A DNA stretch of 64,000 bases, taken from Lepidodermella squamata. Its lineage: Eukaryota; Animalia; Gastrotricha. The notes under the pieces were generated by a model. The model had not been told where the DNA came from, did not search any database, and saw only the letters and a list, made by a program, of their open reading frames with translations. The stretch is taken from contig JBLDXI010000015.1 in NCBI GenBank assembly GCA_047495785.1, positions 372,001 to 436,000 of the forward strand. Reading direction: 5' to 3'. Made by a program: the position numbers and the translations under genes. Position 1 is the first letter of the stretch. The number at the start of each line of letters is the position of its first letter. Below, one piece after another: positions 4,411 through 51,534 of this stretch.

Positions 4411-5224
4411 TGTAGCATCTTGATGGGGATCCAGCTTGTTTTTAGGGTTATTCAGATCATACAATTAGAAACGCAATGATTCCCTTTTTAGAATATCTCT
4501 CCCTGCAGTACTCTCATCTCCCCATTCTGTCCTGTTCGCACTTTCACTAATAACATGCGACAGGCTAACATTATTCCATTAGAGTGTTTGCGTGTGTCCC
4601 GATCGATTGTTCGACTCAAATTTAAGAATACGCATCTTGTTCAAAGGAACACATTTTCTATCGTTGACTATTAACGGGAAAATTTGTCATCAATCGACCA
4701 ATGAAAGGTGCCATCGTCAGCTTTCTACTAAGTACATATTTTGCACACACACAAAAACAAATTTGTGGCTCGGCTATGATATTTCTCTCATTGAGATGAC
4801 TCCAGATGTCGAAATCGCTGCTAGCTTTCTCTAACATTTCGAGAGTGAAGCTTTCATGGGGCCTTGCTAAAACAACAGACTAGGGGATCGGGAATACTAA
4901 GCCATAGATCCTGAAATGCCTGAAGGTACCAATCTCGGAGGTTTTCATGTGCTAGAATCTGAAGATAAGATTTGTTGGTTTTCTTATTTAAAAATCAGCG
5001 ATTTTAACACCTTCTTTATCCATTTATTTTCGAAATCTTGCAGTATTGTTTCATGCTTTTCCTGAGTTTTCATGCTTAAGTTGCTCAAGACACCATTTTT
5101 CTCTAATTCAGATTCTAAAGTCTACGATTCTAAAAATCTTTGACAGTCCCGCAAGGCGTCAATTAATTTTATCAGAATGAACCCGTCTTAAATCAAGATT
5201 CTAAACAAATTACTCATCTCTAGA

Positions 5225-15113: not shown

Positions 15114-15656
15114 CTCCACACAACATGGGGGTAGATGTAGATCCCAGTTTAATCTAAGCTATTCAAAGTTCATATAAAATAAATGAAGTCGCGGCTAGAG
15201 TAGACTCTGAGCTCTCATATAACGAAGGGCTTAGGGCAAGATTGCAACAAAATTCGCGAAAAATATCTTTAGAAAAGTGAGCTTTCTTATTAGCAAGGCC
15301 GATTTTCTAAATCTACTAGCTTTTGCTGACGATGGGAAACTTTAAGGAATGCTCCGATCAATATGTAGTAGGTGTCCATCTAATTTCTACATTTCTACAT
15401 TTCTGACATAGACATATTAGGGGTAGCTCTGCGCGTCGGTCTCATTGAAGTGAGCCGTAGAAAAACTGCGGTATTTCGGGCACACGTGACTGTGACGTGG
15501 AAGGATTAATTAACAAAACGGTAGATGACGTAAGACGACAGTCTGGAAGAGGCTAAATAGTTGAAACTATTATTACATTCAATTTCTCATCCACATGCTA
15601 ACTCGCTCATTATTAAAATAACTCAAGAAGGTTTAAACATCGTTTATTGATTTCAA

Positions 15657-17077
15657 ATGACGGATGGCTTGGACAATGGAGTGTCCCAAGCTTCTTCAGA
15701 AGATGCTATCAAGTGCAGGGTATGTGGTCTCACGGTTCTGAGGCGGCAGCGTTACCAGCCGCGAGTCTGTCACGCTTGTCAGAAGTTTTTCCGACGGAAT
15801 GCTGGAAATTGGCGATCCTTGAAATGCCGTCATAAAAACGAGAATTCTGGCAAGTCTCAGACAAGCCGTGCTCATCGGCGATCTATGTGCTCTAAATGCC
15901 GATTTCAGCGATGTCTAAATGCTGGAATGAAATGTGAGTCTTACCCTAATGAGTGTGATTTTTCTATAGCCCATAATTAATCCCCTCGATCCAGTTTTCC
16001 TGATAATTATTTGACACAATATTAATCATTTCAGGCAAATTCCTCGCTGATAAATCTTTCGAATATTCCGCACCAATCGATCACATTCCTCAAAAAATAA
16101 ATGGCTCGAACGTAGAAATGACTTTGAAGCTAGCTATTGATACGCAACTTCAGCTTCATGATCTAGAACACGTGAGTTGTTATGTTTAAGAAACCTGCCC
16201 CGAGATTAACTCATTCTTTCCTGGTTCAGCTGCCGTTGCGAACAAACTCGGCTTTGAATGTTCTCCACGATCGCAGCTCTTTAAACGATCTTATGTACGG
16301 TAACATCATTGCATTGATGCGGAAAAAGCAGATATTTTCAACCTTCATGCAACGTAAGCTTTGTTTTATTCAATTTATAGAATAAATGTTCAGTCAGCTT
16401 GCAAATATTCCTAATGCGTAATGCTCAATATTGTTTACATTTTGATTGGTTCCAGGTTCTTTCCAATTAAGTAAATCTGAAGCCAGGGAATTGCTGTCTC
16501 GAAACTGGAAGTTGATAACAGTCGCTTTCTCAGCTATGCCCGGGACACCAGGGCGGCTTTATGTGCACCCTGATTGTATGCCACTGTTTCTTGATATGAA
16601 TCCTGAATTTTTGGTAGAAGCCTTTTTTAATAATTCCTCATCCGAACCTATTACAATTGCTTTCAGCCGGCTATCCAAGCGGAGGACGAGACCTCGAGAG
16701 CCCTTGCATCATGGAGCCCCACTCTAATCGAGGCGGCACTGTTCACGTGTAAGCTATTCTTCCGCGGTATGTATCTACTCTTCAATAACACATCCGATTT
16801 GACCGGGAAAATCATTTTAGGTTACAACGATGCTAAAAAATCTTCGAAAGCAACAGAAGCTCAAAAATGCATAGACACTGCTTTCGCGCTGATGTGCTCA
16901 AAGCTGCATGGTCAGAACTCGGCTGATGTCATGAAGCTAACGACTGCAATCGAACAATTGTTATCTGTGACGGCATCTGCCATTGATCAAGGCGGTGCGG
17001 CTGTTGCTCAGCGGCGAGCTGCTTTGGTAAGCAGGGACGAACAAGAGCTAGCTAAAATGACATTCAATATTAAATAG
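15657..17077 (+). CDS. Nuclear hormone receptor, paralog 4 (6 exons; closest to paralog 1)
   Basis: DBD CRVC..CHACQKFFRR..CSKCRFQRC..GM; exons and even introns resemble 400-1872; AATAAA at ~17096. Confidence 0.9.
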
Positions 17078-19635: not shown

Positions 19636-22600
19636 TCAGAAAACCAAAAATTCAGAAAATGAGACAGGCATTTCTCCCAATTTTTCGATGCGAACGTACC
19701 GTCCCAGCAGCGGAGGCGTGCAGTACATCATAAGCGCTTGGCCAATCACCAAATTCGGCATCCGATATCCTCGATAAATATCGCAAATAGGATTCTGAAT
19801 GGCATTAGCATCATCGCCGACTCGAGAAATGACTTCGTAACTCGATGCAGCCAATAAATCAACAGATACATACGATACGATTGCAACGACTTTTGACACA
19901 AGTATCGACTGACCAATGTCAATTCGAAACCAAAAACTGTTTTCACTTCCGAGGACAACCGCAACAAATGACCCGTCGCTTAAGCGAGCGTTAAGCGAAT
20001 TTGCGAAATTCGACGATGTGACTTGTTTCAGCAGAGCGTAATTTGCTCCAACTTCACTGCTAACTTCAATTTTGCATATCGACATGTCAGCCCCACGAGC
20101 GTCTGTTACCAAGGTGACATACCGGCCAGAAACAGGCGGGAAAGAAGAAACAGAAATTTTAACATCGTAAGGAACTACCGGGGCGAAGGTCACGCCGTCG
20201 CCAGCATCGTTGAAGTCCTTCAGAGCTGCATCATCTGGTCCGGTTGGCACTGTATCGGAATAAGCCACTCTTAGTCCAAAAATCGCGTATCCAACGTCCG
20301 CGTAGTTGCAGCCCTTGAAACGGAACCTTCCAATGGGCTGTAGCGTGTAATCGTCCACGTACAATCGAACAGCAAATGCAACCAGGGCTGGTTTAAGGTA
20401 GTTGAAAAACGGCGCAGAATCCGGGCCGCTAGATGGTCCGTCGAAAATTCTAATCCTCGATCCATTGTTTGTGGTATAAGCGACCCACTTGCTTTCGCCC
20501 ATCAGCCGAAATGTCAGATGGTACTTTTCAATCCATGCGGCCAGGGTAGCACTGGATTGAACCGCGATAATGTTAACGATTTTCAGCGAAGTGAAAGTGA
20601 TTTGGAAATAAGGCTGCAGATCTGTGGCTAATGGGATCCAGTCCGCATTGCCGATTTCGTTTTTGCTCAAATCTCCAGGATTAGTTGCACTCGAAGCATT
20701 CTCGACTGATTCGCTATCGAACAGCTCTATGTTGCAAAATTGATCTGGAATAACATTTCATTCATCGTTCTGTATAAAGGGGGTAATTTTTCATTTACGA
20801 GCACATCCTCGAACTCGCCATTTCAAACAAATTTGAGTGCTCCACGATTCAGGATGAAATCTGAGATGGCGAGCTATAATGTGAGGTCTTATAAAGCTCC
20901 ACTGAAGCGTGGCTGAATCGTTGTTTGCAACAAAGATCTAGAAAAAATAGTTTCATTTTTTTCAATTGAGAAGTAACATCGAGTTGCCTTAGTTGAGGAT
21001 AGGCCGATGGCTCGATCGTGGAAGGTTTTGTAGGTAACGCCATTAGTGCTGTATGACAGTCGGTAAGTTCGGACGAAGCAATTGTTAACCGAATGCACGA
21101 TTTTCTGCTCCCCAAAGTCTAAGGTCAGAAATTCGGAGTTCGTAAGAGTCGCTGGGGTCCAAGTGCAAGCCATAGAGCCTCGAATGTCGCCCGTTGCAGA
21201 GCAAACGCCGTAGGGCGGTGACGCAGAGGAGTAGTTTGAACTGTAACTCCATGCCGATGTCGACGATATGTCAGACTCGCAAACGTGACCTTCCACTGTC
21301 AGCGCAAAACATGTGGTGATAAATTAGCAGAATTTTTTCAGCTTACACGTATTGGGAGTAGGAATTTGAGTTGCGAGCTCCATGGCTATGAGAGAATCTA
21401 CGGGACTTTGGTAAATTGTCAGCCAAGTCATTAACCCTGTGAAGATCGCGCCGCTGGAGATATCCTGAAAAAACGAATGCGTTTGTTATGATTCGACTCA
21501 TGATTCGGTTAAAATCTCCAAGTAAGTTACACCTTGATTACTTAGTGCAAGTTCCATCTAATATTGGCATCTTGCTAAGGTAGAAGCACATGCAAGCCCC
21601 ATGCAGAAACCATTATTGAGGATCTCATAGACTGGATCTACGAACATCTCTCAGGTGCAGGTTTCTGTACGATGTACGATATATAATTTATATAGGATCC
21701 TAAAATTCATCACAATGTCAAATTTAGATCTTGCCAAGGTCCATATTTCTACTCAAGTACCGACAATATTTGTTGCCTCGCAATACTTCATTATCTCCCG
21801 AACCACGAGGCCTTTTTTAAGCGGGCTTCACCGTGCGATAGATCGATTGTGCGATAAACATTGCTGGAATCCTAGTTAGAATCGTATCCGAGCAGAAAAA
21901 CAGGTGGTGAAAATGCGACATCGCTTTTAGCAAAGACTTCCCGTTTTACTTTCCGTTAGATAGCAAGATGGCAAGAGCTGTTCTTCGCGCTCGCCAGAGG
22001 AGTCAAGTTTCTTTCTGATAGTCCCTGATGGACAGAATCCAACCCCCTAGCTGAAATTGGCAGCTTCACCAAGTTGGCGCAGATATCCCAAAAAATGTCT
22101 AAAAGCCGATTCGTATCGCGTTTGGAGCTTTTCCTAGCCTTCCACATTGAACTTCTGGGTTGACGGCGCGTTATGGCCCTCTATTCCCCGCCAGGAAAAT
22201 GACGAGATGTAACTTTTCCGCAAGCAGGATGCGACGCCAGAGCTTTGTATTTGATTTGATTTGATTCACGGCTTAAATCACGGACCTCAATCAATCAATC
22301 AAAATGAAGCAATGTCCCACTTTCACGGAGCTAAATCACTCAAATCAAATCATTGACACTACGCAAAGCCTGTGGACCATGGTTCGACCATCAACCATGG
22401 GAATAGTTGACTCATAAGCCTTGTGATGATGTCTGATACCAAAAGCTAAATGTCGAAAGGCAACTTGCATAAAAAAAGAGTATGAGTATAAGTATGAGAC
22501 ACTGATAAATCACAATAAACGACACATCAGGGTTTTCACCAATATGGGGGCTTTGAAACTTAAAAAATAGCGCGAGGTTGAAACTACTGTCGCTCTAAAG

Positions 22601-25600
22601 TAAATTTCTATCGGTAAAGGCGGAAAATTTTTAGTTGGGCGGCATCCGAGATTTCAAGTTTTTCGATTGCATACCTCATACGGTAAATCAAAATCAATCA
22701 AATCAAAAGGTCCTCCCGCGTAAATCACTCTAAAGAAAATGAATTCGAAATCACGGAAAATAGGGTCTAAATCAAACCAAATCAAACCAAATCCAAAGCA
22801 CTGTGCGACGCAACCCTGTTTTCCTGTTTTCCCGACTTGATTCAGTAATAAAAATATAAAAACTGTATCCTTTACTCGTTGTGTAATACTGCGTGTTATA
22901 CCGTAGAGCGGTACAATTTTGAACAAGTACAACTTTGAACATTTTTTCAAAAGTACAATTTTGAACGAACGTTTGCATTGAAAATTTCGTTAATGTTCAA
23001 AATTGTACTTCACACTCACGAAAGTACAATTTTGAACACTTTCATTTTTTTCAATGCAAACGTTCGTTCAAAATTGTACTTTTGAAAAAATGTTCAAAGT
23101 TGTACCCTGTTCAAAATTGTACCGCTCTCCGGTACTGTGTTGCGATGTGCAACGAGACCTACCCGCCCTATGTTGAGGTCATCCGTGTCGGCAGGTATGT
23201 GGTTGCTGAAGCTATAAGCTGTGCCGGCCACGCCATCCCGGTAGCCAGTAATGCGATGAGCGCCGGTCGTGAAATCTACATTTAGCAACAGATGTTGCCA
23301 GCGATTAACAGCTGCATTGCCTGGATCTTTAGCCACCTGCCAACCGCCGCAATTCACAGAGTACGCAAGGGTCATATTTGCTGTGTTGCAGAACATATTG
23401 AGAACAAGAGATGTACCCTGGGTGAGCTGTATTATTGGCTGTACGCCAGCTGTGAAATTCGGAAACAGCATTGCATGGATCGCTATCGTGTAAGGTGGCA
23501 GGGGTTCACTAAGGTTGTAGCCAACCTTATAGCTAGGGAGATAAAGACGCTACACTCAATGAATTAGCAGCGGCCGGTGAGAATCGATACACATTCGAGT
23601 CACCAGTCGACCATGGAAACCCAGCTCCCTGAAGGGGCGTACCTTCCGCAGTTAAAACATTACTTCCATCCAGCGTGGTTAGGCCATTGTTGTAGTCGAA
23701 AGGCGTTGACAGGACGCTTTTCATCGTTGAAGTTATCGGGCATCGCCTCGTAGAATAGACAAAACGGCGCGATAACGCTGTTCCATTATACATTTGCAGA
23801 CACGCATAGCTCGCCGGCTGGCTGCCCGGGCCTCCGATTCTGAAATAGGACCTTTCAGTTTTCATTCCCACGCCCCCGCAGCCTTTCATTGATGCGACGT
23901 ATTCGCCCTCTTGAACCAAGTAGACGAGACTTCGGCCCAAGATAAACACGAATCCAACATAGTTCCACTGGCCGAGTAGCAGCTTCAGTGGCGATGTTAG
24001 CGTCGATTGCGTTGTGTTGCCAAAGCAAGTGAAAACAATTTGAAGATAGCCGGTAGATGAAGTGCTGAGACCCACGTCGAAATTCGTTGAGCTTAACGAA
24101 TCCGTCCAGCCCATCAGCAATCCGCCGAAGCTGATCGGCTTGATATGAAACAGGAGAGAGATTGTGTACCTGGCAGAGAGGCGCGCAGACGACGCATTTA
24201 GCCATAGATAATCGGCTGGAGAGTTGAGGGTCCAGGCACTAAAGAAAGCGAATACAGAGAGTAAGCCGGTAATTCACAAGCCGGATGTAATAAAAGAAAC
24301 GAAAATGGTTTTCTGCTTTCTAGAATCGGTAAATGTCGCAATTTTTTGTCAGCGGCGAAGATTTATATGGGAGTGGGAAAGTTGTGATGAGCCTTTGGGT
24401 CTGTTTGTTAACTTTTTAACTTACCGTAAATTCCGAAATACAAGCCCAGCCGGCCACTTTGATGTTCTTTGTAGTGCCGCCTGGGCTTGTATTTCGGAAT
24501 TTACGGTAACTGCTTTTCATAGCAACATTTTAGAGCTTGGTATATATTAGCTAATAGCAATGATCGATTAAAAAGTTGAAAGTGGCCCTTGCCTTGAATT
24601 GGATTCTAATTAGATGAGGCGATTGCGAGGTCACTTTCACCTGACGGACATAGTCTCATTCACGTTTGTGTCTTAATTGTTCGAAATTCTAATGAAAATT
24701 CTAATTGAATTCTAGGAAATTCCCCCATAAAAGGGTCAAGAGGCCTCGACGCCTCGACGCCTCGGCCCTCTTCCTCAACAGAATTAGGCAGTTGTTCCGC
24801 TTATTAAAGAAATTAAGATTCAATTACGTGTTGCTGTAGCTGAGCACTTTGTCACACGCAGGATTTCCAACCGCTGTGAAAGAACTGTTTGGAGTGACGA
24901 GATCAGCAAGGTTGCAAGCAAACGGAAATAACACCGTAGGGGGCGGAGCTGCAAATACAGCGATAAGCAAAAATTAAAAGTTCCTTTTCCCATGAACTCA
25001 CGAGTCCACGGAGACTGGGCTGTTTGGTCAATCTCAGCGTTGTCTAAGGTCCGTTTGTAGATCTGGATGTTCGATAGCTTCCCAGTCCAGGCGCCCCCCA
25101 TCACGAGGTATGCATTCACCTTGACGGCGGTCGCCGGTGAGCAGTCGACGGCGAGGATCCCACGCATGATGCGATCGATAAATAGGCGAGCTATAGTCGA
25201 GCGACAGTCGAACGTCACAGCGACATGAACCCAGCGATTTTTTCCGATGATTACACTACCGCCGGTGACCGGGAAATTGACCGCTGTGTTATATCCCCGA
25301 GATCGTTCAACCAAAATCAGTCCTGTATCGCTAATCGAAATTCGCATACACGGCATCCAACTAGATGAAAAAACATTGAAATTGGCCTTTTTGGCTTTGT
25401 TACTGAACTCACTTCCCTTGGCTTGAGTTGACCAGATTTAGAATTCCACCAGTGTGCCAAACCCATGCTGCGAAGGTCCATCCGTTACTTTTGTCAACAG
25501 CCAAATTATCCATTGGTAGAAACATCAGCCCAGAGCCTGTCCACTCGAGGGCTGACAAAGCTCGCCCGTTGACACCTGAACTGAACGCCAAAGCACTCGA

Positions 25601-27247
25601 GTAGATTCCATTATTGCCATTGCCACTCAGATCGTCAGCCCGATGCATGATATCCAAAGGCCAGTAGCCATCTGGGACAAGCGTGAATGCCGGGTCCAGT
25701 TGCGGGGTAGTAATTTCTACCGAGGTGATTGTTTTAGTCTCGCCTAAATCAACAGTGACATAGGGCCGGTCGAATGCACTCGCAACACCTGATCGCAATT
25801 TCGTGCAGTTCGTAAAACTCCTCTCTCGGATAACGCGGCTGGCGGTCAAAACTGAGGCGTTAGGAAATCCAAGCATAGGATCTGTGATTTCACCATTTGC
25901 TTTCGCGACAGGGGCTTTGAAAGCTGCATTCGGTGTATACCTCGGAATCGTCTTACAGCCGAGTAGCTCGATTTTGTAACAACGTGCCGCGCCAGAGAAT
26001 GAAAGGGGCTCAGCTTTGAAGAATTGAGCGACGATAGGTCTCGGAAATACAACTGTCGCGATATTGGCTGCGTCGAGATTGCCAGATAGGGTGGTATTGC
26101 CATTGTTCTCCTGAAGTTCAATCCAATTATCACTCGCCCTAGCCTTGTAACTCAGTAGAAAATTTGTGACCCAGGAGTTCAGAGGAGCGCAGCCTTGGAA
26201 TTGGGCAGCAGTTACCACCGTTTGCTTTCTCAAGTCAATTGTCAATGGCAAACTGTTAGCATAGGCAGCCAATCCCCAATTTAGCCTCGAGTGATACGGC
26301 TTTGCTACTACTCGATCGGTCGAAATTTGTGAATCTTCAATTTCATTAGTTTCCATGCCCAGAGGTTCGAAGCATTGGGCTGGAGAGCCTTTAACTGCGA
26401 CCTTCGCTTTGCTTGCAATGCCCGTTCTATTCTCAAATGTGCTGGTAAATTTCACGTGCTTAGTGAGAATCGGCCGGAACGGCGTGAACGCCTTAGTCGT
26501 GCCGCCGACAGGATCAAACAGCTTTTGTTCGCCATGACCATTATTGATCGGTTGAAAGTTCAATCCATCGAAACTCGACTCCATTCTCAGCTTCTGCAAA
26601 CAGTTTGTGCAATAAAGCTGAAATTCTGTCATCCAAATAAAACGTTGAAGATCTATTCTAAACCAAGTACCGACAGGAGCATTCATAGTGAACCCGAAAT
26701 AATGCGTATGCTTCTCGTAAAGATGAGCGAGTTGCGGCCTCTCATCACTGTACACAGAGCTCGAAAAATATGCCAAATCAGTTACGTAAGAATTATCAAA
26801 GTCGACAATTTCATCGCTTGAAACTTGTGGCAACAAACAAGGCGCTGTCCATGCGGATTTAAGTATTGCATCCCATATCGCCGTTACGGCGCAAGATCTA
26901 GCTGAACACTGACGTGATTTCTTCATCAGACCCTCCGATGCCACTGAAAATGATGTTGCATCTGCAGTCGTGAATAGCTGGGCGATCTGCGAACCAGGTA
27001 CATCGAAGGTCCACAGGAGGCAACTTTGATTGCTTACAGTAAATTGGCCAGATTTGCATAGATCGTTAGCATTACACCAAGCCATGCAGTTTACGGCTAA
27101 TTTGACGGAGCTCAGATTTCTAACCAGGTGAATCGAGAGGTTGTAGCCGGCTGTTACTGGCCCGACTGCTTTTCCGGGGTAGATGTTATAGTGAAAACCT
27201 CCAGCAACAACGCTGTGGCATATTGCTGCCGCTATAAGCAAAATCAT
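19636..27247 (-). CDS. Secreted mosaic PAN/F5-8C/LamG/F-type-lectin protein, paralog A (8 exons; 1-bp frameshift at ~23543-23545)
   Basis: Signal peptide MILLIAAAICHSVVA; PAN Cys pattern; CFEPLGME..ELLGC discoidin; GYWPLD..DLSGNGNNG..WVHVAVTFD LamG; C-terminal WFRIDIG..NPIC..GRYVRI; exon-for-exon match to 40691-47174. Confidence 0.8.
22901..23132. mobile_element. Palindromic MITE with TA TSD (Tc1/mariner-pogo type) in an intron of paralog A
   Basis: TA-CCGTAGAGCGG...CCGCTCTCCGG-TA; ~80-bp TIRs built from GTACAATTTTGAAC repeats. Confidence 0.85.
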
Positions 27248-28235
27248 TCTCGGGATATGACCGACGTTATGTGGTTTTTCTTTGTTTGCTGATAGTCAGT
27301 TTGCGAAATCGCAAAATTTGTGAACCAGCCTGACTCGACTTTGTTTTTTACACATTCGCAATGCCTATTGCATTGCATGGTAGGTATTGATTGGATAATT
27401 CCTTCAAATTTCGCTGCCACAAATCTGTTTGTAAAAATGTGGAAGCCACAGCGATATTAATTTATTTAATTGAACCATATTTTCTACTGCGTGGGAATGA
27501 ATAATTTAGTGACCGAAAGGTTTGAAACGATTCGTAGGGTGTCAACATTCGACCTGCGCATTTTCTTGCTCGTGCGACATTTTTATTTTTTTTACGCATA
27601 AAAACTTTGTTCTCACAGATTGATCGAGATGACAAAATAGAATCAGCTTAATATATCATGAAATTGATCAAATTCGAGTAACAACGAGATTTCCAATGCG
27701 TTCTCGGGAATAATTAAACGTGGTGATTTTCAGGATATCAATGATCGGCCTGAAATTGGCACAAATTTCAGATGTGAGCTCACATGCTGATAACATGAAG
27801 TATCTGAGATAACTGTAGATTAAGATCAAATTCAGTAAACGTAAAAAAATTGACGAACAATGTCGCTGTCGGGCATCTATGCCGGCAAAACACCAACGCA
27901 CTTGACCCACTTTTTATTGTTGTCGTACGGCAGTGTCACGTGAAACAAGAAACACCTTTTGTTATCAACCTACTTTTCCATCAGGCTTTGAATCGTTCGC
28001 CTGTTCAACTCTCAGGTGTGAAGAGAAATGTTGGGAAGCACTACGACTTGGAATACCAGAGCCTGGCAACGCGGCACGATGCAAATACTTTAAATCCTCC
28101 GGCGCATTAAAGCTGCTAATTATTATTGGAGCTTGCCTTGGAGCGCAAATATGAACCGAGCTTTAGCGCTAAACCTTGGACACTTTATTGATTAGTCCGA
28201 GTGGCTTAAGGGCGCCTTTCACACTTTTAGCATAA

Positions 28236-31200
28236 ATGAAAAGTGTTCAGCTTGCAATGAAGGCAATTAGGTCCGTTTTCTTGCTGGTACTTCTTCCGAC
28301 GCTTGTAACGAGCGGGACTAATTTCAAACGGTATGCTAATAACTCGATCATACCGACGCCATCAAGCGGTCTGGGAAACCTAAATGGTTACATGATAGCT
28401 TTGACTGAGCCCGCCCGTGTTGTGTCGATTTGCGCAGCATATTGCTCTAGAAACTCGCAATGCCAATCGCTTCAGTTTCAGAAAAGCACGAAATCCTGTT
28501 CACTGTTTACTATCTCACCCGATGGCTCGAGTATCGCGAAACTGGACCCAAATCCCGACTACGATTCCCTGGCTATAACAGGCCAGAGTGAGCTAGCAAA
28601 ATCAGGGCAGTGTAAGGGTAATCAGTGCGTAACGAGCTGGTACTTCGAAGCAATCAAGCGTGAAATCACGCGGCCGACCTGTTGGAAGGAGTTTGCCAGT
28701 GATCCTGCCCCGACTTGTCCGGTCGAAATGCTGGACTACGACACGAGTTACGTCAGCGACCTCGGCTATTCCTCGAGCTCAATGACATACTGGACGGTGA
28801 CTGGGTACAATCTCTACCAGGAGCCACCTTACCACGCCAGAATCACCGCTGGCCACGTGAATTGGTTTGTCTGGGCTGCAAATTCGCCTGCTGGCCAGTG
28901 GATCAAGGTCGATTTGCAGCGATTTGTTTGGCTAACGCAATTGCGCCATCTATGCCGCTATTCTTATAATCAATGCGCACAGCAGTTTCGAATCGACTAT
29001 TCGCTGGATGATGTTACCTACACAACAGCAATGTCTGGCCGAGCAAAGCAACAAGTTAGAAACTCGAATTATTCAGTTTGATTGACTCATCATCCTTCTC
29101 TTTTAATCACTTAGCTCCTAAACGGCCCATTTACCGGCGTAGCCTCATATCAATTTTTTCGGCCAGTATTGGCGCGTCAAGTCAAGCTAACAATCAGCGT
29201 TGAAAACGGAACAGCTCAATTTTTTCGATCCGGCAAATTCGGATTTATCGGATGCCCTGTTGTTAACTGCTTCGAGTCGTTTGGGGTTGAGAGTGGCGAA
29301 ATCATTGACAGCCAACTAATACCCGCTACACCAATGCAGCAAAGCTACTACTCCAGAATCAACTGGGGCTTGGCGGCCGGAAATAGCCCGAGCAGCATTA
29401 CGGTCGACCTCAGAAAATCGGCTTTCATCCGAGCAGTTCAAGTTCAAGGCTGTTCGAAGACGAATTCCTGGGTAACAGCCTTCGGTTTTCAGTATAAAGC
29501 CAACACTGTCGATAATTGGGTTAATTTGGTGGATAATTTTGGATCAAAATCGTTTACTGGCAATATAGATGGTACAACTATGGTTTTGATAGTGTTCCCC
29601 AGCGCCGTTCTCGCCAGATTTTTCACATTAATTCCTGTTTCATTTTCGACCTCAATTTGCTACCGCTTTGAGCTGCTTGGCTGCAAAAGTTAGTTGACAT
29701 AAAACGTCTGAATTTTGTAAATAATTCATTGCTCCTTTCAGCCCCTCCTGTTTACCTTCGCAACTTGGCAGTTAATGGAATAGTCAATGCGGCAGGTTTC
29801 CATACGGCTCTTTCCGCCCCGAGTTTGATAACGCAGCCGCGAGCTGTTCGACTACAGCACCAGCAAAACTGCACACGAATCACTGGCAATCCAGCCAGCT
29901 CAAGCAGGCCCTACGTCACAATCGATTTAGGGTCAACACAAACGATCAGCTCGGTCGATATCGTGACGCCTAACTTGCCCGGCGTAGCTACCCTGAACCC
30001 TGATGGGCTGTGGCTGTTTGACTATCAGCGAGGGGGCGATGACTTGTCGAGCAACGGCAATCACGCCATCATTCCGCCCAGCTTGAGCTACGTAGCTGGG
30101 TTCGATGGCCGTCCTCTGGGTGCTTTGCAGTGGCCGGGAGCAGAACGAGCGATTCTTGTTCGAACGACTAACTTCAATCTGTTAGATAGAAACAATGGCT
30201 GGACATTCGCAACGTGGATTTACTACCCAACGGGAACTACAGGAAGCATGTTCTTTATGAAGTGCTCGTCGAAGGGCATGTAAGCTGGCGGTTTTATAAT
30301 TATTTTGCTTGATATCCCTATTACTTTCAACAGGGGGACCACGTATTGGCGATTAAACATGCAAATTTTATCTTCGCGGGTGATCAAGGTTGATTACACG
30401 ACCAGTTCAACAGCCAGTTGGTCATGGCCGACGATGGATGTCTACGCGCCACCTGATCGCTGGTTCTTTTTGGCTGTTACTGTCGATTGCAAAAGCGGGA
30501 TGGGCCGCGTTTACATCGATGGCGCTGATCGCGGTATCAACCATATCAGTTGCAGTGCGGCGGACTTCCTAATGATGACTGAGTACTTCGAAATTCGAGG
30601 TCAATGGAGTGGTCGCATCGCCTGCATGCAATTCTACAAGCGGGGCCTTGATCAGTCCGAGATTGAACAAGCCTCGCGTTGTCCCTGGCAGAGTAAGTTG
30701 ATTAGAGGTTCTTTGGGACATTTTATAGGTTTTTCTGACGCAGCGCCCCCGCCTGTTGCAATATACCCCCTGGCCTGTACCTTTACTGACGTAACCAGTC
30801 AGGGACCAAGCTTCACCCCGAATGGCAGCCCTCAATGCTCAAAGATGTACGGATTCACATCAACGTGAGTAATTAGATTTAAAAAGCTAACCATAGCCAT
30901 AGCGTATGGAAATTTTCTAGAGCTTGAAACTTTGCGACCGCAAATGACTTCATATCAATGCCGATTTCCACAGCGCCTGGTAATATCCTGGACCTTCAAT
31001 ACTCATTCACTGTTGTCATTCACGTGATGCAACCCAATGCAGCTGATGGCATTATTCTCGGCTGGTACAGCTCTGCTACTACCCCAGTTGTTTACCTGTC
31101 AATTTCTGGCGGTAAATTGGCTTTGGGCGCGAAATGCCGTGGGGCATCAGGCGGCAGCTCAAATTTCACGACTTCAAGGCAGCTCATTGCTAATCATTGA

Positions 31201-33990
31201 GCTTATATCGCTCTGATCTATGACCACGCCGCTGGAACTTTGCTCACAGCTCTCGACGGTTCCGAGAGTTCTTTAATCTCGTTCCCGTGTTCAAATGGCT
31301 TGGAAACTAACACAAGCCTATTTCAAGTAGGAGGCTCTACACCGGTCAATGTTGCCTGTCTCCATTTCTACAAAACAGCGTTGAATCGGAGGCAAATCGC
31401 GTCTTTGAAACGATGCCCAATTTCTTCGACTGCAGACATGACTGCGGTGGCGAGTGCTCCATTGGATGGCTCATATGGCAGCAAATCAATTACGAACGCA
31501 ACGGCGGGAGACGTTATCACGGCTTCTCTTTATCCCGCTGGTTGATTGAAATACCTTTTGAAATACCCTTACTGTGAATATTTGTAATACAGGCTCTGGT
31601 TTCCCATGGCGAGGCAATACCGTTGATGTTTGGGGTCTGTCAAGCAGCACTACGTCACACTATTACTACTCAGTGGCCGGGAGGACCGACTTGTTATTTG
31701 GCCAGGGTTCATCCAACCCAACGCCATACACGTTCGGCATGTTTTTCTACAGTAAGGAATCTGGAAATGGCGTTACGATACCATTGCTCAGCCTCAACGA
31801 ACCTTCGCCGGACTATTCTAAGATCAACATATGGCCTGTAACACCCAGCGGAATCACGTATAGAGTCAACATGTACGGTACGTCGGATACTACGTACACG
31901 AGCTATACAACCGCAGTGACAAATGTGAGCTCTTACTTCAACATATGGCGGCATCATATGTTGACCTTTGACATGACCCCTGGGGCCATGCGATATGAAG
32001 GATTCTACGACGGTGCGAAGATCGTAAGTGTACCACTGCCTAATGTTAGGCCGGGGCCAATTGGTCGCTTTGGAATCGCTCATGATATGTACCAGAACAC
32101 TCTCGTAACCCGGGGCGATATCGCGTGCCTCACCGTATTCCAGGGCTACCTTAGCCAATATTTAGCGACGGAAATCGCTACACTGTGCCCCGGACCTGTG
32201 TTGCGTAAGTCTTAGGGTTACAAATTTACTTCAACAATAACGTTGTTCCCCTTCAAAAGTTCAAGGACACATCTGCGAAAGCGATTTGAATGTTCGAGCC
32301 ACTGCAAGCTTCAGCTCTGTATTCACATCGGCGGCTGGGGTAAAATTCGACCGGTTCCATCTGCAAAATCGATGGACCGGGGATGCGAACACGGCTGGCT
32401 CAACTCCGTGTTGTTGGCAACCAGCTGCTTCTGATTCAACCCCGATTCTGACTCTCGACCTTGGCGAGGAGCATACGATAGCTTCAATCGCAACCCAGGG
32501 TGACTACTCAACCGGCTTCTACGTCACAAGTTTCCAGATGTCATACGGGACCCCGGTCAACTACTTTTTGTGGGTCTACGAATTGCCGAGACCTACGGTT
32601 GTAAAAGTTAGTCATAAACTCAGCATTTGCTGGTCATAACCATTCAAATTATTTAGGTTTTCGCTGGGAATGAAAATAGCGATGGAGTTATTTGGAATGC
32701 CATTCGACCTTACTTTTCAGCTAGATACGTCCGAATCCACCCTCAAACATGGGTCGGCGGCGTAGGATTGCGAGTTTTACTCCGCGGTTGCCCAGGTAAC
32801 ACAATGATACTTTCACTAAGATCCTCTAGTAACAGAATTGCTCAGATTTCTTCTGCGAGGCCGAGTTGAATGACGGCAACAGCAGCAGTATCAGTGTTTC
32901 CACCACTCAAACACCAGCTGTTGAACCACAGACGTTCACAATCGGAAGCACTGTCGACTTCCGGCCTCTCTCAACTGACCCTCAGCCCTATTTTCAAATA
33001 ACTTTCCCGTTGACAAAACTGATATCGGCTGTCGCGGTTCAATGCAGTGTTGACTCGACATCGTGGATCACGAAATACCATCTCATGGGCAGTTTGGACG
33101 GCATCACATGGACCGGATACGTTTGGCCTCACAACGGTTCGAGGCTCAGAATTTTCGATGGCCCATCAGCCTCAAGCAATCCTAATCCGTTCATATCCTA
33201 TTTGAGCCCGTATCCGTTTCAAACTGCTTCGTTGCGTCTGGTCATCGATGACTTCAATGTAGCCCCGTATGGCAGATTCAGCTTCAAAGGCTGCTCCGCC
33301 CCGAGTTCAGACAACTCATTTGCATCGATAGTCTCACCGCCTGTCGGCAAGGTTTCAGCACGATTGAGCTCGTCAGCCCCAAGCTCAGCTTCTGATGCAG
33401 ACTCCCAACCGCAATGTTCGCAAATCTCTCGAGTCCCCTATGGTAGACGCGTTCAGTTGCAATGTGAAAACGGACCGATTTCTGGTCGATATCTCAGCCT
33501 TGTTGGAGCTAGTCAGGGTTCTACAATTGAGATTTGCCAATTTGGAACTTATTACGACAATGGCACAGATTTCGCTAGGTACAAACTGGTTACGAGTAAC
33601 ATCTCCTCGATTCCAGCTGCGACTCTAACCGCTCTCACCACGCCTGGTCCAAATAGTGTTGGGGCATCACTGATTGCTGGATGGCTTCAGGTCGATCTCG
33701 GTGGCTCATACTCTGTCGGGAAGGCCATTGTCATTACACAGCAAAGTGGATCTTGGGTCGTTGAAAATCAGCCAGGTAGCAGCCAGTTGACCATTAGAGT
33801 CGGCATGGCCTCTGGGGCAAATCTCAGATCGAACCCTGTCTGCGACTATTGGCAGGATGGCAATCGAATCAATGTCGTCCAAGGCCAGGCAATAACAATG
33901 CACTGCTTGCCTGCTTTGAATGGACGCTACGTTTCCGTCGAAAAATATGGCACTGCAACAATTCAAATCTCGCGAATTATGGTTTTCTGA
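28236..33990 (+). CDS. Secreted mosaic PAN/F5-8C/LamG/F-type-lectin protein, paralog B (divergent; ~10 exons; in-frame TGA at 30925 and 31198)
   Basis: Signal peptide (start at 28236 or 28257); same domain order as paralogs; exons checked join in frame through short GT-AG introns; terminal TGA aligns with paralog stops. Confidence 0.8.
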
Positions 33991-39303: not shown

Positions 39304-40690
39304 GTAATTGTGAGAGCTAATCGAAACGCCATTGTTATTCTGGATAATTGTGAGAGTTTATCTGAACGACATTCACATTACCTTGGTTACCGGTGTTCGC
39401 AACTTCTAATAATTCCTTAATATTTCACTTATTTGTGCCAATAAAGCCACGTGTTGAGGCGACTCATTTTAGCAACCCATGAGGCGGCTGCTCTCTGGGA
39501 CGTAACAAACATTAAACTATAAACTGACCAATATTTTACAACATGTGACTTTGATTTCATTAATATTCGATTCAGGCCGTTTTATCATGAGTTGATTTAC
39601 GAAAGACTGATTAACAAAAGTGTTGCAATGATTTGATTTGTAAATGATTTAGCCTCGGTGATGCACAGCTGATTTGGGTCTAGAGAATCGCCACTTCTAG
39701 AGAACATAATCACCTCTGGTCTGTGCTGAGTCTGGATTTAGATGGCCGCTATCCTGACTTATCCTGACAACAAGCAACTTCAGAATGTGCAAAAACCCAA
39801 AGGTTTAGCCTCGTACTCAACATTCTTGATGAGATTTTCTATTTCTTTTGATTTATATCGGTTTAGATGTTTTGATGAGATAAACAGAAATACTTGAAGG
39901 TTTCGAATTAATATGATTCATTTAAGAGTTTAACTCTATAAATAAAGTTAAATCAAGTCACTCATTTTGAAGCAAAGTTACAGTTTAACTGGTTCATGCC
40001 TTCAGATCGGTTTGAGGTTAAAAACTTCGAGGAAAAGTTACCAATTCTTCATCTAGATTGGGGAAAATATTGATCAATAAAATCCAATGTCCCATGACTC
40101 ATTCGGGAATTGTAAAGCTTCGCGCTTTATCTCTAACCCATTTTGCTCTCCAAGCTAATTAAGCTCTTAAAAAATTATTACAACAGATATGAATAATTAA
40201 TTGCACGATTTTGCGATCGATGAACCGCATCCAAGTACTCAGGCGGGAATAGGTGTGAGACTGCAGAACGGCCGACTCCATCCCTTGGTTCACCGCGAGA
40301 GAAACACCAGCCACCATGTCTTCTTACTGTTCCACCGGCGCATCGCGCAGCTCGCAAAATATGATTTAGTAATGAACCTTATACTGCATGCCAGGTTCCA
40401 GGTGAACACGAGCACGAAATAGCGGCGATCGAGAAAGGCAGGCGCTATTACTAACACCAGTACCAGCGGATATTCTAAAAAATACGCGGGATTGAACCTA
40501 GATTAATGGGCAGAACGAGTGTTCGTGAAATACAATAATTCGATGGTAACTATCGATTAGGGCGGTGTCTGTCCTAGTTCGCCCGCTCGGTAACTAGCGA
40601 AACATGAATCAATAATTCGCGAGTATATGTAGCAAATTAACTACGTCATAAAACAGTAATAAAACTATAACACTGAACTTGTCACTAAAC

Positions 40691-43600
40691 ATGAAGCAGT
40701 TGTGCATATTCTTCTTGTTCTTTCAATTGGCGTATGCGGGCGGTTACCATTACAACATCTACCCTGGGATGGGTTTTGTGCCAATTACAGCTGGCTACAA
40801 CCTCTCAATACAAATTGTCGGCAATTTGAGTTCAATAAAAAGCGCTACACACTGCATGGCATCCTGCAATACCAACGTTCTATGCAAATCCGGCCAATTT
40901 ACTCCGAGTGCTGAAGCTTGCCTACTCTGGACCTTCGGTGTACCTGGGTCACAAGTCGCCCAATTAGCTAACAATGCCTTGACGACTTCGTTCTCCATCA
41001 CGGCGCAGAGTAATATGGTGAAATCGCGCCAGTGCTCGGCGACGACTTGCGATATCACGTGGATTTGGGATGCAGTTCTGAAATCAGCTTGGACTGCGCC
41101 TCACTTGCTGCCGGGCGTAGCGAGCGATGAAATTGGAGATTACGACAATTCCTATGTCAGCGATAACGCTTATTCCGCGAGTTCTGTCTACCTATTGGAA
41201 TACATCCAGCAGGGTCGGCTCTACGCGCAGCACAATTACTATCATTCGTTTGCACGCAACGCCCCAGTCGGGTCCTGGCTTCGGATCGACCTTGAACGAT
41301 TCGTTTGGATGACCGAGTTTCAAGTACTTTGTAAAGGCTGCTTCCTCAGGGTCAAACTTGAGTACAGCTTTGACGGGGTGGACTTTTACCCACTAGATAA
41401 CGGCCATGGTGAACCAGCATTTCTAGATCCTGTCTCTCTGGTTCTCTCAGCTTTCACTCTATTCCGGCCAACGCTAACTAAGCACATCAGAATGTCAAGT
41501 GCTGTGGAAAACCGAACTGCGACCTACAGCACATATGGAAGATATGCGGTCAAAGGAAGCCCTGCCCAATGTTTCGATCCTCTTGGAATGGAGAGCCTGG
41601 AAATAGATGATACGCAGCTTTCGACCACCATCACCGGCCCGTACTACTCGAGACTGAATTGGGGCATGGCACTTCAGGCCAACACGCAGCCTCTCCAAAT
41701 CGATTTGAGGAAGCAAACAATTGTAACAGGCATTCAGCTGCAAGGATGTGAGCAACTGAACTCATGGGTCACGGTTTTTAGCCTTAGATACAAAGCTAGG
41801 CCGAGGGATGCCTGGACCGATGTTGTCGAAAACAGTGGCCGTAGTGATCTGAAAGGCAACGTTGACAGCACTCGGATCGCGACAGTCGTATTTCCGAAGC
41901 CAATCGTCGGCCAGTTGTTCCTGATCGAGCCGAGTGGCTTCTCGGGGTCGACTCGTTGTTTCAAGGTAGAGCTGCTAGGCTGCAGGACTGTGCCGAGATA
42001 TACTGCGAATCTCGCCTTCAGAGGCAACGTTGTAATAGCTGGTGCGCCTGAGACAGATACGTTGCTGGGTTTTCCGAACGCTTCAGTTATTACTGCAAGC
42101 CGGGTTATTCGGGAGAAGAGCTACATGAACTGCACAAAACTGAAAGCTGCGAATTTATTCTCTCGTCCTTGGTTGACGATCGATCTAGGCGTGAAACGGA
42201 CCATCACCTCAGTCGAGTTGACCACCTCGCAGATGGATCCTCAATTCTCGCTAGTTCCAGATGGTTACTGGCCTCTGGACCTACTTCACAGGGCTGATGA
42301 TTTGAGTGGAAATGGCAACAACGGGATTTATTCGAGCTCACTGAAATTTGGCAATGGTACCGATAATAGGTCTCTTTCCGCGCTCGAGTGGACAGGCTCC
42401 GGAAAGCTGCTGCTGCCGATGGACAACTTGGCAGTGGACAAGAACAATGGCTGGACGTATGCGGCTTGGGTCTGGCATACCAGCGGCGAGATTAATCTTG
42501 TCAACAGCAGCCAAGTGGAGTAAGAATAAAAATGATTCGCTTATTTTCACTTCGGATTTGTTAGGGAACTCTAGTTAGGAACAACCTCCAATTGCATAGC
42601 TTAGGACTTAGGAAGTGGTCGTTTTCTAGGCCATACACAGATAAAGTTAAAATTTAGACATTTGTATTCTGACTACTCTCGCAATTTTCCCTTTCCAAGT
42701 TGGCAACCGTGTTTACGCATTTGGATCGACGATGCGGGAAACGTCCAAGTTAACAAGGCCGAAGGCGTTTCCGGCACCAGGGCTTTTCCGTTTGCTACAA
42801 ATATGGGCCCTTTGAATCGAGTTGTAAAAAATCAATGGGTTCACGTCGCTGTTACGTTCAACTGCCGCTCGAGCGTCGCTCGCGTTTTCATCGACCGCAC
42901 TGAGCGTGGCATCGCCTGGATACCGTGCCAGCCAGCAACGGCCGTCAAAGTCAACGCCTACCTCGTGATTGGCGGCTCGTGGACCGGCAAGCTGGCGAAC
43001 ATTCAGATCTACAGACGGGCATTAGACAACGACGAGATCGAGCAAACGGCGCAGTCACGCTGGACGCGTGAGTTTTGCCGCGGTTGAGCGTAGTCTTCAA
43101 TAATTAATTACTTATAACAGCTCCGGTACCAACTGTCTTGTTCCCGTTGGCATGCTCGCTCGACGATCTGATCACGCCGAACGGCAATTTCTCGATCGCG
43201 GGAAGCCCGTTGTGCGAGAACTTTCTCAGCTACAGCAGAGCGTAATATTGATTTTAATCATTTTATTCGGTTTGTTCATGCTTAAGATTGTTGAACCCAG
43301 CAAACCAGCCTAATCTATAACGCGAGTGTTGATTGAAACTTTCAACCTCGTAAAATCTTGATCAAGTTGATCAGGTTAGCTTTCTACGATGCTGCAGAGG
43401 AAGGATGATCAATTTTCGAATCGAAGAAGTTAGCAATGCTAGAATCAAGGAATAACCATTATAGATACATGTATATGTAAGCGACTCTGAAACGGGGTCA
43501 CTCATAAACGGCCATAGACAAAATAGGCAACCAGGAAAGTACACTATGTATGAACGTGTTGAAACAGGTTGAAACGTGTTGAAGAAATCAAATAAAATCA

Positions 43601-46600
43601 AAGTCACCGGGCCCTCCTAGAAAAAACCCATCTGGTTTCTGGCGGAGTAATACCTTGGGCTATGATTCATGGTGTTTGATAGTACTTGCTAATGACTTAT
43701 ATATCATCAAACGGACAGATTAGAGTGATTGGTAAGCATGTTTTTAGTACAATCGCATATGGCTAGGTAGAGAAGTTCAAGTTGAAAATGATCCAATGGC
43801 AAATTAGGTGTTTACTTTTAGACCATTTGGATATTTGACTTCTCTGGGGTATTGTCTAGATTGTTTCTAAATCTTTTTTACTCGTTATGTTGTTTAGGGC
43901 ATGGAGACTGCCCAGCGAGGCCGATTATCTGTTCGCCACCAGCGCCTCAGTAAGAATGTCGAATCAATGGTCTACCAGCCTGTTAATCCACGTGAGACCT
44001 ACCAGCGCCAGCAGCGGTTGGTTGCTCGGTTGGATAGATACTGTGTCGGCCAGCAATTTCAGTGTTGGATTCAGCATAACTTCGTCCGGCTATCTCAGGT
44101 TGTCGTTATTATGCGCCGGCGGCAACAATCCGTTGAACCTAACATCTCGTGCGAAATTGTTAATCAACGAGTGGAACTACATCGGATACAGCTACTACTA
44201 CAACAACATACTTTACCTGGTTCACGAGGGTGAGTTCGTTGCGAGCACAACAGGAATCGGCGCTTGCTCTGGCGGTGGCTTAGCAACCAATAGAGCCATC
44301 TTCAGAATCGGCGGCCCTGGCTCTGTTCCTGCGAGCTACGCGTGTCTCATCTTCCACCCAGTAGGTTTGACTCGCAAATTCGTCTATTCGTCGAAACGAT
44401 GCCCGATTACTTCTACGAATGAAATGAAAGCTCGACTGGTAACACCATTTGACTTCAATAACGGACTGTCGACACTTGCTGACAACAACGACATATTCTA
44501 TATGAACGGCTCAGCAGACCGGTCGACGAATTTCCCATGGTCAACGGGCGATTCGAATGTCTACCGGTTCAAACCCTCAGCCATGAATTACCTGACGTCG
44601 ATTAGCTATCCGGTGACACACAAAATCGGTTTAAACCGATCAGCCCCTCTGCCCTCGTACACCATGGCTGTTCACGCCTATCTGATGTCTGACATCACAG
44701 CCGGGCGCATGCCGTTGATCCAACACGTCGACTCGAGCTTCAGCCCCACATTCTCGCTGCAGCTTCACAATGGCTCGGCGATTAATTACGAACTGAAGTG
44801 TGGCGGGGTGCAGACCGCTCGGGATCAAGGCGGCGTCACGCTCAACCGTTGGCAGCATCATCTGGTCACCGTCGACTTCACGCCGGGCTCGCATGTCATG
44901 ACTGGCTACCGAGACGGAGTGGCTGGTGCAAGCAAAACATTTTCTGATTGCATTCCTGATGATTCTACAAACTTCGTCATAGGAAGAGTAAGTTGTCAGA
45001 ACTTAATTTTTAAAAAGCTTATGAAAGATTGGATCACTTGTGCTTTTGGCCCTTATAATCCCCTTGGACCTTGACATGTTTGAACGAATTTTCAAAGTTT
45101 TTCAAATCCTTGAGGGGTATCGTACCCCCAGTTCGGCAGGCGAAAGTGGGAAAACCGCCAAAAACCACAGGGGCGATCCTTTGGTCTTAAAATTGGGGCC
45201 CGAAAATTGCCCATTTTTCGAGGATCCTACTTCGCGCACTGATATCAATCCTGAAACTTGAATCTCTATGGCTTATGATTATGAAAACTTGAATCTTCAA
45301 TTCAACCCTCAGAATGGATTGGCAGCTGAATATTTCAATGGCATGATGACTTGGCTGGTCATTTACCAAACTGCTGCAGATTCACTGCTAGCAATGGAGC
45401 TCGCCAATCAAATTCCCACGCCAAACATACGTAAGATACATTTGCTACTTGTAATCGGCGATAGAACTGTTTATAATTATCACAGTTGAGGGCCATGTTT
45501 GTGAATCGGATCTTACTATCACTTCGAGATGGAACTACAGCTCCAACTACTCATTGGCCTCGCCACCGTACGGCGTTTGCTCCGATGCGAATGACATACG
45601 CGGTTCGTTAGGTTGCAGTTGGACACCAGCTAACGCGTCTTCGTCTGAATTCTTAACTCTCGATTTCGGCGAGCAGAAAGTCGTCCATTCAATCGCAACA
45701 GCTGGCGATTCAACCAACAACTGCTTCGTCCGAACCTTTCGACTTTCCTATAGCAATAATGGCGTTACGTTTAAGGAGTTCCACGACCGTGCGAGAGGCT
45801 TATCGTCTACTAAAGTTGGTTTCTTGAATTCTGGTTAAAGCTTTTATATTTGTATCATAATACCTACTTAGATTTTCTCTGGAAATACTGATTCAACTTC
45901 GACGCAGTGGAACTTCATAAGGCCTCAGATTGTTGCCCGATTCCTGAGATTCATCCCTGACTCTTGGAGTGGCCACATCTGCCTTAGATGGCGGGTTCGC
46001 GGCTGTGCACGTAAGTTCTCAACGATTCTTGGCTTTGACCCATTGGACTCATTTGAATATTTTTCAAGATCAATTCTGCAACATTGAGCTTTTCGATAGT
46101 GATGCAGTTGGAAATGCTTCAAGTGCAACTAGTCCCAATAGTTTGAACAATACTGATATCGGCAATGCAGATTGGATCCCGTTGGCAACCGATCCCCAGC
46201 CTTATTTTCAAATCGCTTTCACACAGCTGAAAATCCTGAATATCGTCGCAGTTCAGTCGAGCGCGACTTTGGCCGCTTGGATTGAAAAGTACCATCTGAC
46301 GTCAAGATTGACTGGGTCTAGCTCTAGGTGGGTGGCTTATAACTCTGGGAATAACCCTCCGAGGATTCGCATTTTCGATGGGCCTTCGAGTGGCCCAAAT
46401 TCTGATCCCTTCATCAGCTACCTTAAACCGGCTCTAGTCGCAGCTGCAGTTCGATTGTACGTCGACAAGTTCACCCTGCAGCCGATCGGGAGGTTCAGCT
46501 TCAAGGGCTGTAACTACGTTGAGGTTCCCTACTCGATGTATGGCTTCAAGATCGGTGTATCAGATATAGTCCCTACAACGGCTAATATCGACTCGCTGAC

Positions 46601-47174
46601 GCCGTGCAATATTGGAGGCGGCTCTAATTTCAATCGACATATGCAATTTGATGCGAAAATCTCCGTTCCGTGTTACCCGCCAGTTTCAGCTCGATACATC
46701 TCAATCAGCCAAGACACACGCGGCGCGGATATGCAGTTGTGCAAGGTAGAAGCAACTTTCGAGCCGGGAGCGAATCTGGCATATTTGAAGCCGGTCACAT
46801 CGTCGGCCGCCCTTTCGTATTCCCAGGTTACCGATGGGTCATTTTTATCAGTAGTCAACACTGGGAGCTCGGCTAATTTCTGGGTCCAAATCGACCTCGG
46901 CCAGTCGCTTCTCGTGTCCAAAGTTGTGCCGGTGGCTTCGAGTAACGTAGATTATTCTGTGGCTATTAGCTATGAGCTAGTGGCCCGAGTCGGCGATTTG
47001 ACGAGCGCCACTGCTAATGCGATTTGCGACGTGTATCGAGCAAATGTCGTGCCGGTTTTGACAGCTAGCCAATCGATGCCCATGTACTGCACGCCACCAC
47101 TGAAGGGGCGATACGTCAGGATTGACAAATCTGGCGTGATGCCAGTCAATTTTGTTCAATTTCTTGTATATTAA
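40691..47174 (+). CDS. Secreted mosaic PAN/F5-8C/LamG/F-type-lectin protein, paralog C, intact (1699 aa; exons 40691-42519, 42700-43067, 43121-43241, 43898-44987, 45313-45430, 45486-45814, 45872-46010, 46069-47174)
   Basis: Signal peptide MKQLCIFFLFFQLAYA; exons sum to 5100 nt with compatible phases and no internal stop. Confidence 0.88.
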
Positions 47175-50794: not shown

Positions 50795-51534
50795 GTGATT
50801 CCACAAGAATTCGAACTGGAAAGTACCTATACATAACTTATACTACTGCTGTCTTTTGAAATGGGCTGAGATTTGAATAAAACAACCCACCCTTGTTTAC
50901 ATACATTTATGTTTACATCAAATAGCCAAATTTTGGTTCAACTCCGTCGGTTGAATACTCTAGATACAGTGGTGGGATTACTCATTTATAGCTGACGTTT
51001 CGACGCCGATCGATTCCCACACCGAAGAAATATAAGGAAACGGTATGACGTACGACAGAGCGTATAGCAATGCATTTCACGGCTTGCCATCATTTGCTTC
51101 TCTGAATTGCATCGAAAAGAAAAAAGAAAAATAGCTGCATATTATTTTCAGCCGATACATTTGCTCCTTTACCAAACAACAGTTGAATACGGTTTACCAC
51201 GATCACGTTGATACTTGATACGGTAACCAGGGTCACGAAAAAAGCAAATCATGTGACAGCGTACAGTAGTAACGTCACGGCTAGCCTTGATGATATAGAA
51301 AGCATGGAATAATTTCGGCAGGAATCCATCTGCCAATTATTTTTCTGCTCGCAAATTTGCGCCGCTATCGACCAGAAAAGTTCATTTTGCATCGGTTGGA
51401 TCTCGCATGCGTTGGCGTTATCTGAAATTCGTTGCAATCATGTCCATCACTCCCTCATTTATTGATCACTGGTCGCTGTACCCTTTAGCGAGCAGAGAAA
51501 CCGATATATTTCTTTTAAAATATTGCAAAATAAT

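Follow-up and report, generated by a model that had tools for sequence, protein, structure and literature searches.

How should a gene be understood that reads openly from its start codon to its terminator except for two TGA codons, both standing where its relatives have a conserved Trp? The question is raised by gene B, which lies in a 64,000-nt stretch of the genome of the gastrotrich Lepidodermella squamata (GenBank assembly GCA_047495785.1, contig JBLDXI010000015.1, hereafter C15, positions 372001-436000; called the window below), and whose two TGA codons had been pointed out in an earlier note on this DNA. As argued here, gene B is probably a very young null allele, that is, a nascent, non-processed pseudogene arising from a recent double nonsense event.

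Gene B and its two in-frame TGA codons

We built the model of gene B exon by exon from an alignment with its sister copy B', which is found in the same 121-Mb assembly (151 contigs) at C15:~669.9-675.7 kb on the minus strand, 270 kb from B, and shares 87.4% nucleotide identity with it over 6,081 nt including introns. Gene B occupies positions 28257-33990 of the window and comprises 10 exons with a coding length of 5,253 nt (1750 codons and the stop), separated by introns of close to 50-60 nt (Table 1). The acceptor of exon 5 was set between positions 30743 and 30744, an upstream AG being ruled out by a 1-nt indel in B'. The acceptor and the donor of exon 8 are each uncertain by 6 nt, with the frame kept either way. 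An additional in-frame ATG is present in gene B at position 28236, 7 codons upstream of the ATG shared with B' (28257), and is absent from B'.

The domain content and order of gene B (Pfam PAN_1, F5_F8_type_C, Laminin_G_3 and F5_F8_type_C_2) match those of three more distant paralogues in the window, A (19639-27295, minus strand), C (40652-47171) and D (51534-59231), which have fewer introns than B, and B is collinear with B' across 6 kb. By these matches gene B is one copy in a large family, amplified in tandem, whose members are secreted, lectin-like PAN-discoidin-LamG proteins.

As the earlier note had described, both TGAs lie in the frame of a single exon, exon 6, which codes for the second LamG domain (LamG2), and both are read in the assembly sequence. 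The first of them (site 1) is the second codon of the exon, at a domain boundary. Exon 6 is delimited by the acceptor ...TCTAG/A and the donor G/GTTGAT, and its length (620 nt, or 3x206+2) confirms that skipping it would break the frame, by joining phase 2 to phase 1. On the intact exon 6 of B', the Laminin_G_3 signature is found at residues 23-160 (1.1e-6).

At both positions, a conserved Trp residue of LamG2 is replaced by TGA in B. In the alignment, Trp occupies both positions in paralogues A, C and D, and both sites are TGG in the five closer paralogues found elsewhere in the genome (B' and four others, at 88% and 67-70% nucleotide identity, respectively). Family-wide, site 2 is TGG in 29/29 other members, and site 1 is TGG in 24 of the 26 that can be aligned, with Tyr and Leu in the remaining two, which bears out and extends the conservation claimed in the earlier note. 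Since both sites are TGG in B' and in the four outgroup paralogues, the G>A change at each of them can be assigned to the B lineage as derived. The changed bases are positions 30927 and 31200, which correspond to C15:402927 and 403200.

The remainder of the gene is intact, as the earlier note had also stated for the downstream exons and splice sites. Apart from the two TGAs, the sole stop in gene B is its terminator, which is in place, and the start ATG is shared with B'. All exonic indels between B and B' are of 3 or 9 nt, with no frameshift, and every intron of the two genes begins with GT and ends with AG. In the five close paralogues all exons are open (5/5). Gene B therefore lacks the classic marks of a pseudogene, namely frameshifts, lost splice sites and a lost start codon.

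Constraint, age of the stops and the case for recent inactivation

To gauge the age of the stops, we counted dN/dS per exon and then summed the counts. The pairwise comparison of B and B' gave dS 0.30, dN 0.056 and dN/dS 0.19. The earlier note had suggested comparing the ratio before and after the stops and had named relaxed values as contrary evidence; these were not observed, with per-exon values of 0.13-0.25 both upstream and downstream, except in exon 9, which has zero nonsynonymous differences. Polarised substitutions amounted to 57 nonsynonymous (2 of which are the stops) and 45 synonymous on the B lineage vs 51 and 53 on that of B' (Fisher p 0.40 without the stops), and to 20 and 21 vs 31 and 24, respectively, downstream of the first stop. 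No relaxed constraint on B, with a lineage dN/dS moving toward 1, was thus detected relative to B' in the polarised counts, over the whole gene or downstream of the stops. At the 665 positions with one residue in all four outgroups, 22 private changes fall on B, the two stops among them and the rest mostly conservative, vs 25 on B', and exon 6 carries one nonsynonymous change besides the stops in B vs eight in B'. A neutral phase longer than ~20-30% of the B branch is rejected; on the pseudogene reading, the stops then date from the final portion of this branch. As B is as constrained as B', the stops must be very recent unless the function has survived them. If gene B is a pseudogene, the lack of relaxation is compatible only with a very young one.

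We infer the following course of events. Two separate G>A transitions would have hit the third base of two TGG codons of exon 6. The first would have lifted selection from gene B, and the second would have arrived within a short neutral phase, leaving too little time for further damage to the remainder of the gene. Ribosomes would halt at codon 799 of 1750, giving at most the N-terminal part with the PAN, discoidin and first LamG (LamG1) domains, and nonsense-mediated decay would probably degrade the B mRNA. That the function is lost, in what order and when the two hits occurred, and that the mRNA decays are all inferred. The B allele may be fixed or still segregating, and each hit might even come from a different haplotype if the haploid consensus is a mosaic.

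A survey of the genome with exons 3, 6, 7 and 10 of B' yielded 63, 64, 24 and 55 matches, respectively (206 in total). Among these, only B has TGA as the only type of stop in the whole gene. The other stops are a single TAA in one exon-6 match and, in three exon-10 fragments, one TAG or mixtures of TGA, TAG and TAA. Decayed fragments with mixed stops indicate that pseudogenes do arise in this family, and the restriction of the TGA-only pattern to B argues against a systematic use of TGA for Trp.

The earlier note had considered two TGG>TGA changes in one exon too odd for ordinary decay. We modelled nonsense mutations by applying the substitution spectrum observed here to the intact codons of B'. 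Nonsense changes represent 4.2% of substitutions in the gene, and Trp codons are their largest source with ~22% of the flux, TGG>TGA and TGG>TAG being the two biggest classes (11% each). Two random nonsense hits would both fall at Trp codons in 5% of cases and both be TGG>TGA in 1.2%, and the chance that the second falls in exon 6 equals the share of this exon in the flux, ~10%. One further nonsense hit is expected per ~24 neutral substitutions (~0.5% divergence), which would add only ~7 polarisable nonsynonymous changes, close to the 4-6 by which B actually exceeds B'. The double TGG>TGA pattern is therefore mildly unusual, was chosen post hoc and is quantitatively compatible with a short neutral phase, ~0.1-0.5% neutral divergence being enough for the second hit, and the objection is not supported.

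Several points nevertheless weigh against a nascent pseudogene. Under random decay, the probability that a single exon takes two like hits while the gene shows neither a frameshift nor measurable relaxation is of the order of 1% or less, judged post hoc. At an indel:substitution ratio as high as 1:8, ~3 indels would be expected before the second nonsense hit, and 0 were observed. Old stops tolerated through recoding would explain the constraint data just as well.

Alternatives to a nascent pseudogene

The main rival is an assembly artefact, according to which the true genome, or one haplotype, has TGG at one or both sites and the TGAs result from a consensus or base-calling error or from a mosaic of two haplotypes. 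It would account for the absence of any other sign of decay in gene B. At site 1 the reading of TTGGAA as TTGAAA also falls where two homopolymers meet, and paired errors in run length can look like G>A there. The B locus itself is the sole 100% match in the assembly, with no second haplotype there to compare. However, the G>A change of site 2 sits in the middle of GGG and so is not a run-length error, and a consensus of normal accuracy is very unlikely to contain two stop-creating substitution errors within a span of 273 nt. Systematic base-calling error, one of the explanations offered in the earlier note, fits poorly with the confinement of the pattern to B among the 206 family exon matches, in which no systematic motif miscall was seen. 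On balance we regard an artefact as unlikely. Even less probable is a truncated product that is now functional, either as an N-terminal protein of ~798 residues with the PAN, discoidin and LamG1 domains or, through a cryptic in-frame acceptor in exon 6, as an isoform without most of LamG2. The location of the first stop at a domain boundary suits the former, and in-frame AGs followed by an open frame past the second TGA (31269, 31317, 31392, 31455 and 31482) would permit the latter, but the pyrimidine tracts of these cryptic sites are poor and such an architecture is found in no paralogue. Moreover, the downstream constraint would be unexplained unless the change were very recent, in which case this alternative collapses into the nascent pseudogene. 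We rejected an in-frame splice escape from site 1 as impossible: the TGA is 4 nt from the acceptor, and a NAGNAG alternative and a strong-looking AG at 30972-30973 both shift the frame. The only acceptors that stay in frame are the cryptic ones after the second TGA, which are weak and would delete most of LamG2. A single local burst of G>A hypermutation, also raised in the earlier note and here taken to be cytidine-deaminase-like, could explain two G>A changes that share a strand and are 273 nt apart. The polarised spectra nevertheless give no excess of G>A (15/102 changes on the B lineage vs 17/104 on that of B'), the B-lineage changes in exon 6 affect both strands without strand coordination (4 G>A, 3 C>T and 3 others) and the complementary-strand contexts of the two sites differ (TC and CC). 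We give such a burst hardly any credence.

The remaining alternatives hold that gene B is still translated in full. In the broadest form of this idea, Trp can be inserted at some UGA codons in this animal, whether through efficient near-cognate readthrough or through A-to-I editing of UGA, so that the TGAs are tolerated, B still gives a full-length protein and TGG>TGA is near neutral in some genes, which is very unlikely in our view. Programmed or tolerated readthrough, with a near-cognate Trp-tRNA reading both UGAs to yield some full-length protein with the ancestral residue and the TGAs being near neutral or regulatory, is slightly less probable still. It accords with the undiminished downstream constraint and with the insertion of Trp at UGA in yeast, where Trp, Cys or Arg tRNAs read this codon (PMC4150775). 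Among the tetranucleotides, UGA-C is leaky, UGA-A favours the Trp-tRNA and UGA-G favours Cys over Trp (PMC4748822). The contexts of B, UGA-A and UGA-G, are thus unfavourable to the programmed readthrough envisaged in the earlier note: there is no leaky +4 C or CUAG, and the four bases of site 1 are those at which both B and B' terminate. In addition, the stops are not conserved, being absent from the 29/29 paralogues checked, and two stops in series multiply two low efficiencies. Folding exon 6 as a whole, together with its flanking introns, gave a z of -1.34, so that no stable structure is predicted at that scale. A general use of TGA as a sense codon for Trp was excluded by the TGA-A terminators of B and B', by the family survey and by long exons in the window (>600 codons) with zero TGA. 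A reading as selenocysteine was dropped, as neither a SECIS element nor any other Rfam family was found at gathering score across the whole window. A-to-I editing, which would restore Trp at both sites of the mRNA by turning UGA into UGI, has the precedent of the fungal PUK1 gene, with two tandem UAG codons edited to UGG (PMC4817773), and an ADAR gene whose product has a deaminase domain and two dsRNA-binding motifs is present in the genome. However, both adenosines have a 5' G, and ADAR acts very poorly on such sites (PMC8809894), in keeping with the reservation of the earlier note, and the fungal and HDV precedents concern UAG rather than UGA. No double-stranded RNA signal was found around the two sites: shuffling exon 6 together with its flanking introns gave folds as good in 3 of 20 cases. 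Near-complete editing would be required at two sites. Editing is accordingly an exceedingly improbable explanation. The ADAR-type gene is located at C38:74314-76843, with two dsrm motifs upstream of a complete A_deamin domain (4e-83) in a 444-codon exon. A second deaminase gene, ADAT1-like, is found at C13:~164.0-164.7 kb; two TGAs inside an ADAT-like match proved to lie within a 53-nt intron.

The gene family and other features of the window

Table 1. Features of gene B, with positions numbered within the window
Feature	Position	Strand	Description
Exon 1	28257..29054	+	ATG kept in B', signal peptide, PAN domain, start of first F5/8C (discoidin) domain; Pfam PAN_1 (1.4e-6), F5_F8_type_C; B' alignment, donor site
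Exon 2	29115..29688	+	F5/8C domain; Pfam F5_F8_type_C (2.7e-14); splice sites
Exon 3	29742..30279	+	Weak NedA-like galactose-binding match; 63 family matches in genome, all open
Exon 4	30334..30692	+	First LamG (Laminin_G_3) domain; Pfam (8.6e-7); splice sites
Exon 5	30744..30864	+	Linker; alignment to B', splice sites
Exon 6	30921..31540	+	Second LamG domain; carries both TGAs; 620 nt, in phase 2, out phase 1
Site 1, first in-frame TGA	30925-30927	+	Codon 799/1750, next base A; ancestral TGG; frame A-stop-NFATANDFI
Site 2, second in-frame TGA	31198-31200	+	Codon 890, next base G; ancestral TGG; frame LIANH-stop-AYIAL; hallmark Trp of the LamG sandwich
Exon 7	31593..32204	+	Third LamG-like domain by homology to paralogue C; no Pfam match on B or B'
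Exon 8	32260..32606	+	F5/8C domain, first part; Pfam, splice sites
Exon 9	32657..32795	+	F5/8C domain, second part; Pfam, splice sites
Exon 10	32846..33990	+	F5/8C and NedA-like galactose-binding domain (C-terminal end); Pfam, splice sites
Natural terminator	33988-33990	+	TGA, next base A

The PAN-discoidin-LamG family has at least 64 matches to the LamG2 exon, mostly in tandem clusters (C19:1.50-1.91 Mb and 3.16-3.50 Mb, C15, C4, C33, C64, C3 and others), and nearly all copies are open. Family fragments with in-frame stops were found at C18:73900-74238 (TGA and TAG), C19:3392844-3393628 (2 TGA, TAG and TAA) and C74:728088-728501 (one TAA), and look like older pseudogene remains or unrecognised introns. 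In a paralogue at C19:~254-260 kb the last exon is split: residues 1-62, with one TAG (C19:254044-254229), adjoin the gene, and residues 46-380 (C19:228203-229207) lie ~25 kb away, which would correspond either to a copy interrupted by an insertion or to two copies. The divergence between B and B' is uneven, with dS of 0.13-0.19 in exons 8 and 10 and of 0.40-0.44 in exons 1, 2 and 7, which suggests gene conversion of the 3' part (32260-33990) between these two genes, 270 kb apart and in opposite orientations. Exon 7, with only 81% identity between B and B', distinguishes the two copies best. A word search with the exon-10 frame returned no near-identical protein of 212-674 residues and one distant protein at 37% identity; this is the length range of the search, and full-length relatives of ~1750 residues lie beyond such exon-sized queries. 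An exact look-up of the 80-residue frame between the two stops gave no match.

Elsewhere in the window, three paralogous exons (5192-5521, 8923-9285 and 15651-15977), part of a tandem gene array in its first 17 kb, share the Cys-rich motif CKVCGL...QPxVCxACQKFFRR, which looks like a divergent zinc finger of the nuclear-receptor type. The segment 60673-61632 is of low complexity and GC-rich (0.52), and several of its frames are open on the two strands; in one of them a signal-peptide-like start is followed by His/Ser/Gly/Pro-rich repeats.

Significance and comparison with known systems

As one freshly inactivated copy among at least 60 lectin-like genes, gene B would capture birth-and-death turnover at a point only about 0.1-0.5% of sequence divergence ago. 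On this reading it matters little in itself. For annotation, the locus carries a warning, as it will be mis-modelled or split, and it also offers a clean natural experiment. Should a full-length product be shown at the RNA or ribosome level, gene B would become a rare animal case of UGA-to-Trp recoding at two sites.

Among systems in which internal stops are overcome, A-to-I stop correction in filamentous fungi (PUK1 of Fusarium graminearum) shares with gene B two in-frame stops in a conserved domain of an otherwise intact gene, with Trp after editing, but it involves UAG, with the edited A after U, and is ADAR-independent (PMC4817773). In B, an animal gene, the codon is UGA with the A after G, and no duplex is predicted. 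Programmed UGA readthrough (UGA-C or UGA-CUAG; PMC4748822) similarly has an in-frame UGA with constrained coding sequence downstream. Gene B differs in having A and G rather than C at +4 and in its stops, which are found in no paralogue and arranged two in series; for exon 6 and its flanking introns folded as a whole, no stable structure is predicted.

Some ciliates and Blastocrithidia have nuclear codes in which UGA specifies Trp, and UGA at conserved Trp positions is common to these and gene B. Here, in contrast, TGA ends both B and B', long exons are free of it and the other 29 family members lack it at the two sites.

Large multigene families, such as chemoreceptor, lectin and immune-receptor arrays, are known for nonsense alleles, and the nascent or segregating pseudogenes of such fast-turnover families provide the closest likeness, with one copy harbouring premature stops among intact neighbours, no frameshifts yet, and older fragments with mixed stops elsewhere in the genome. 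Gene B departs from them in that both hits are TGG>TGA, fall in a single exon and are accompanied by no measurable relaxation, which implies that the event was extremely recent or that the two hits are on different haplotypes.

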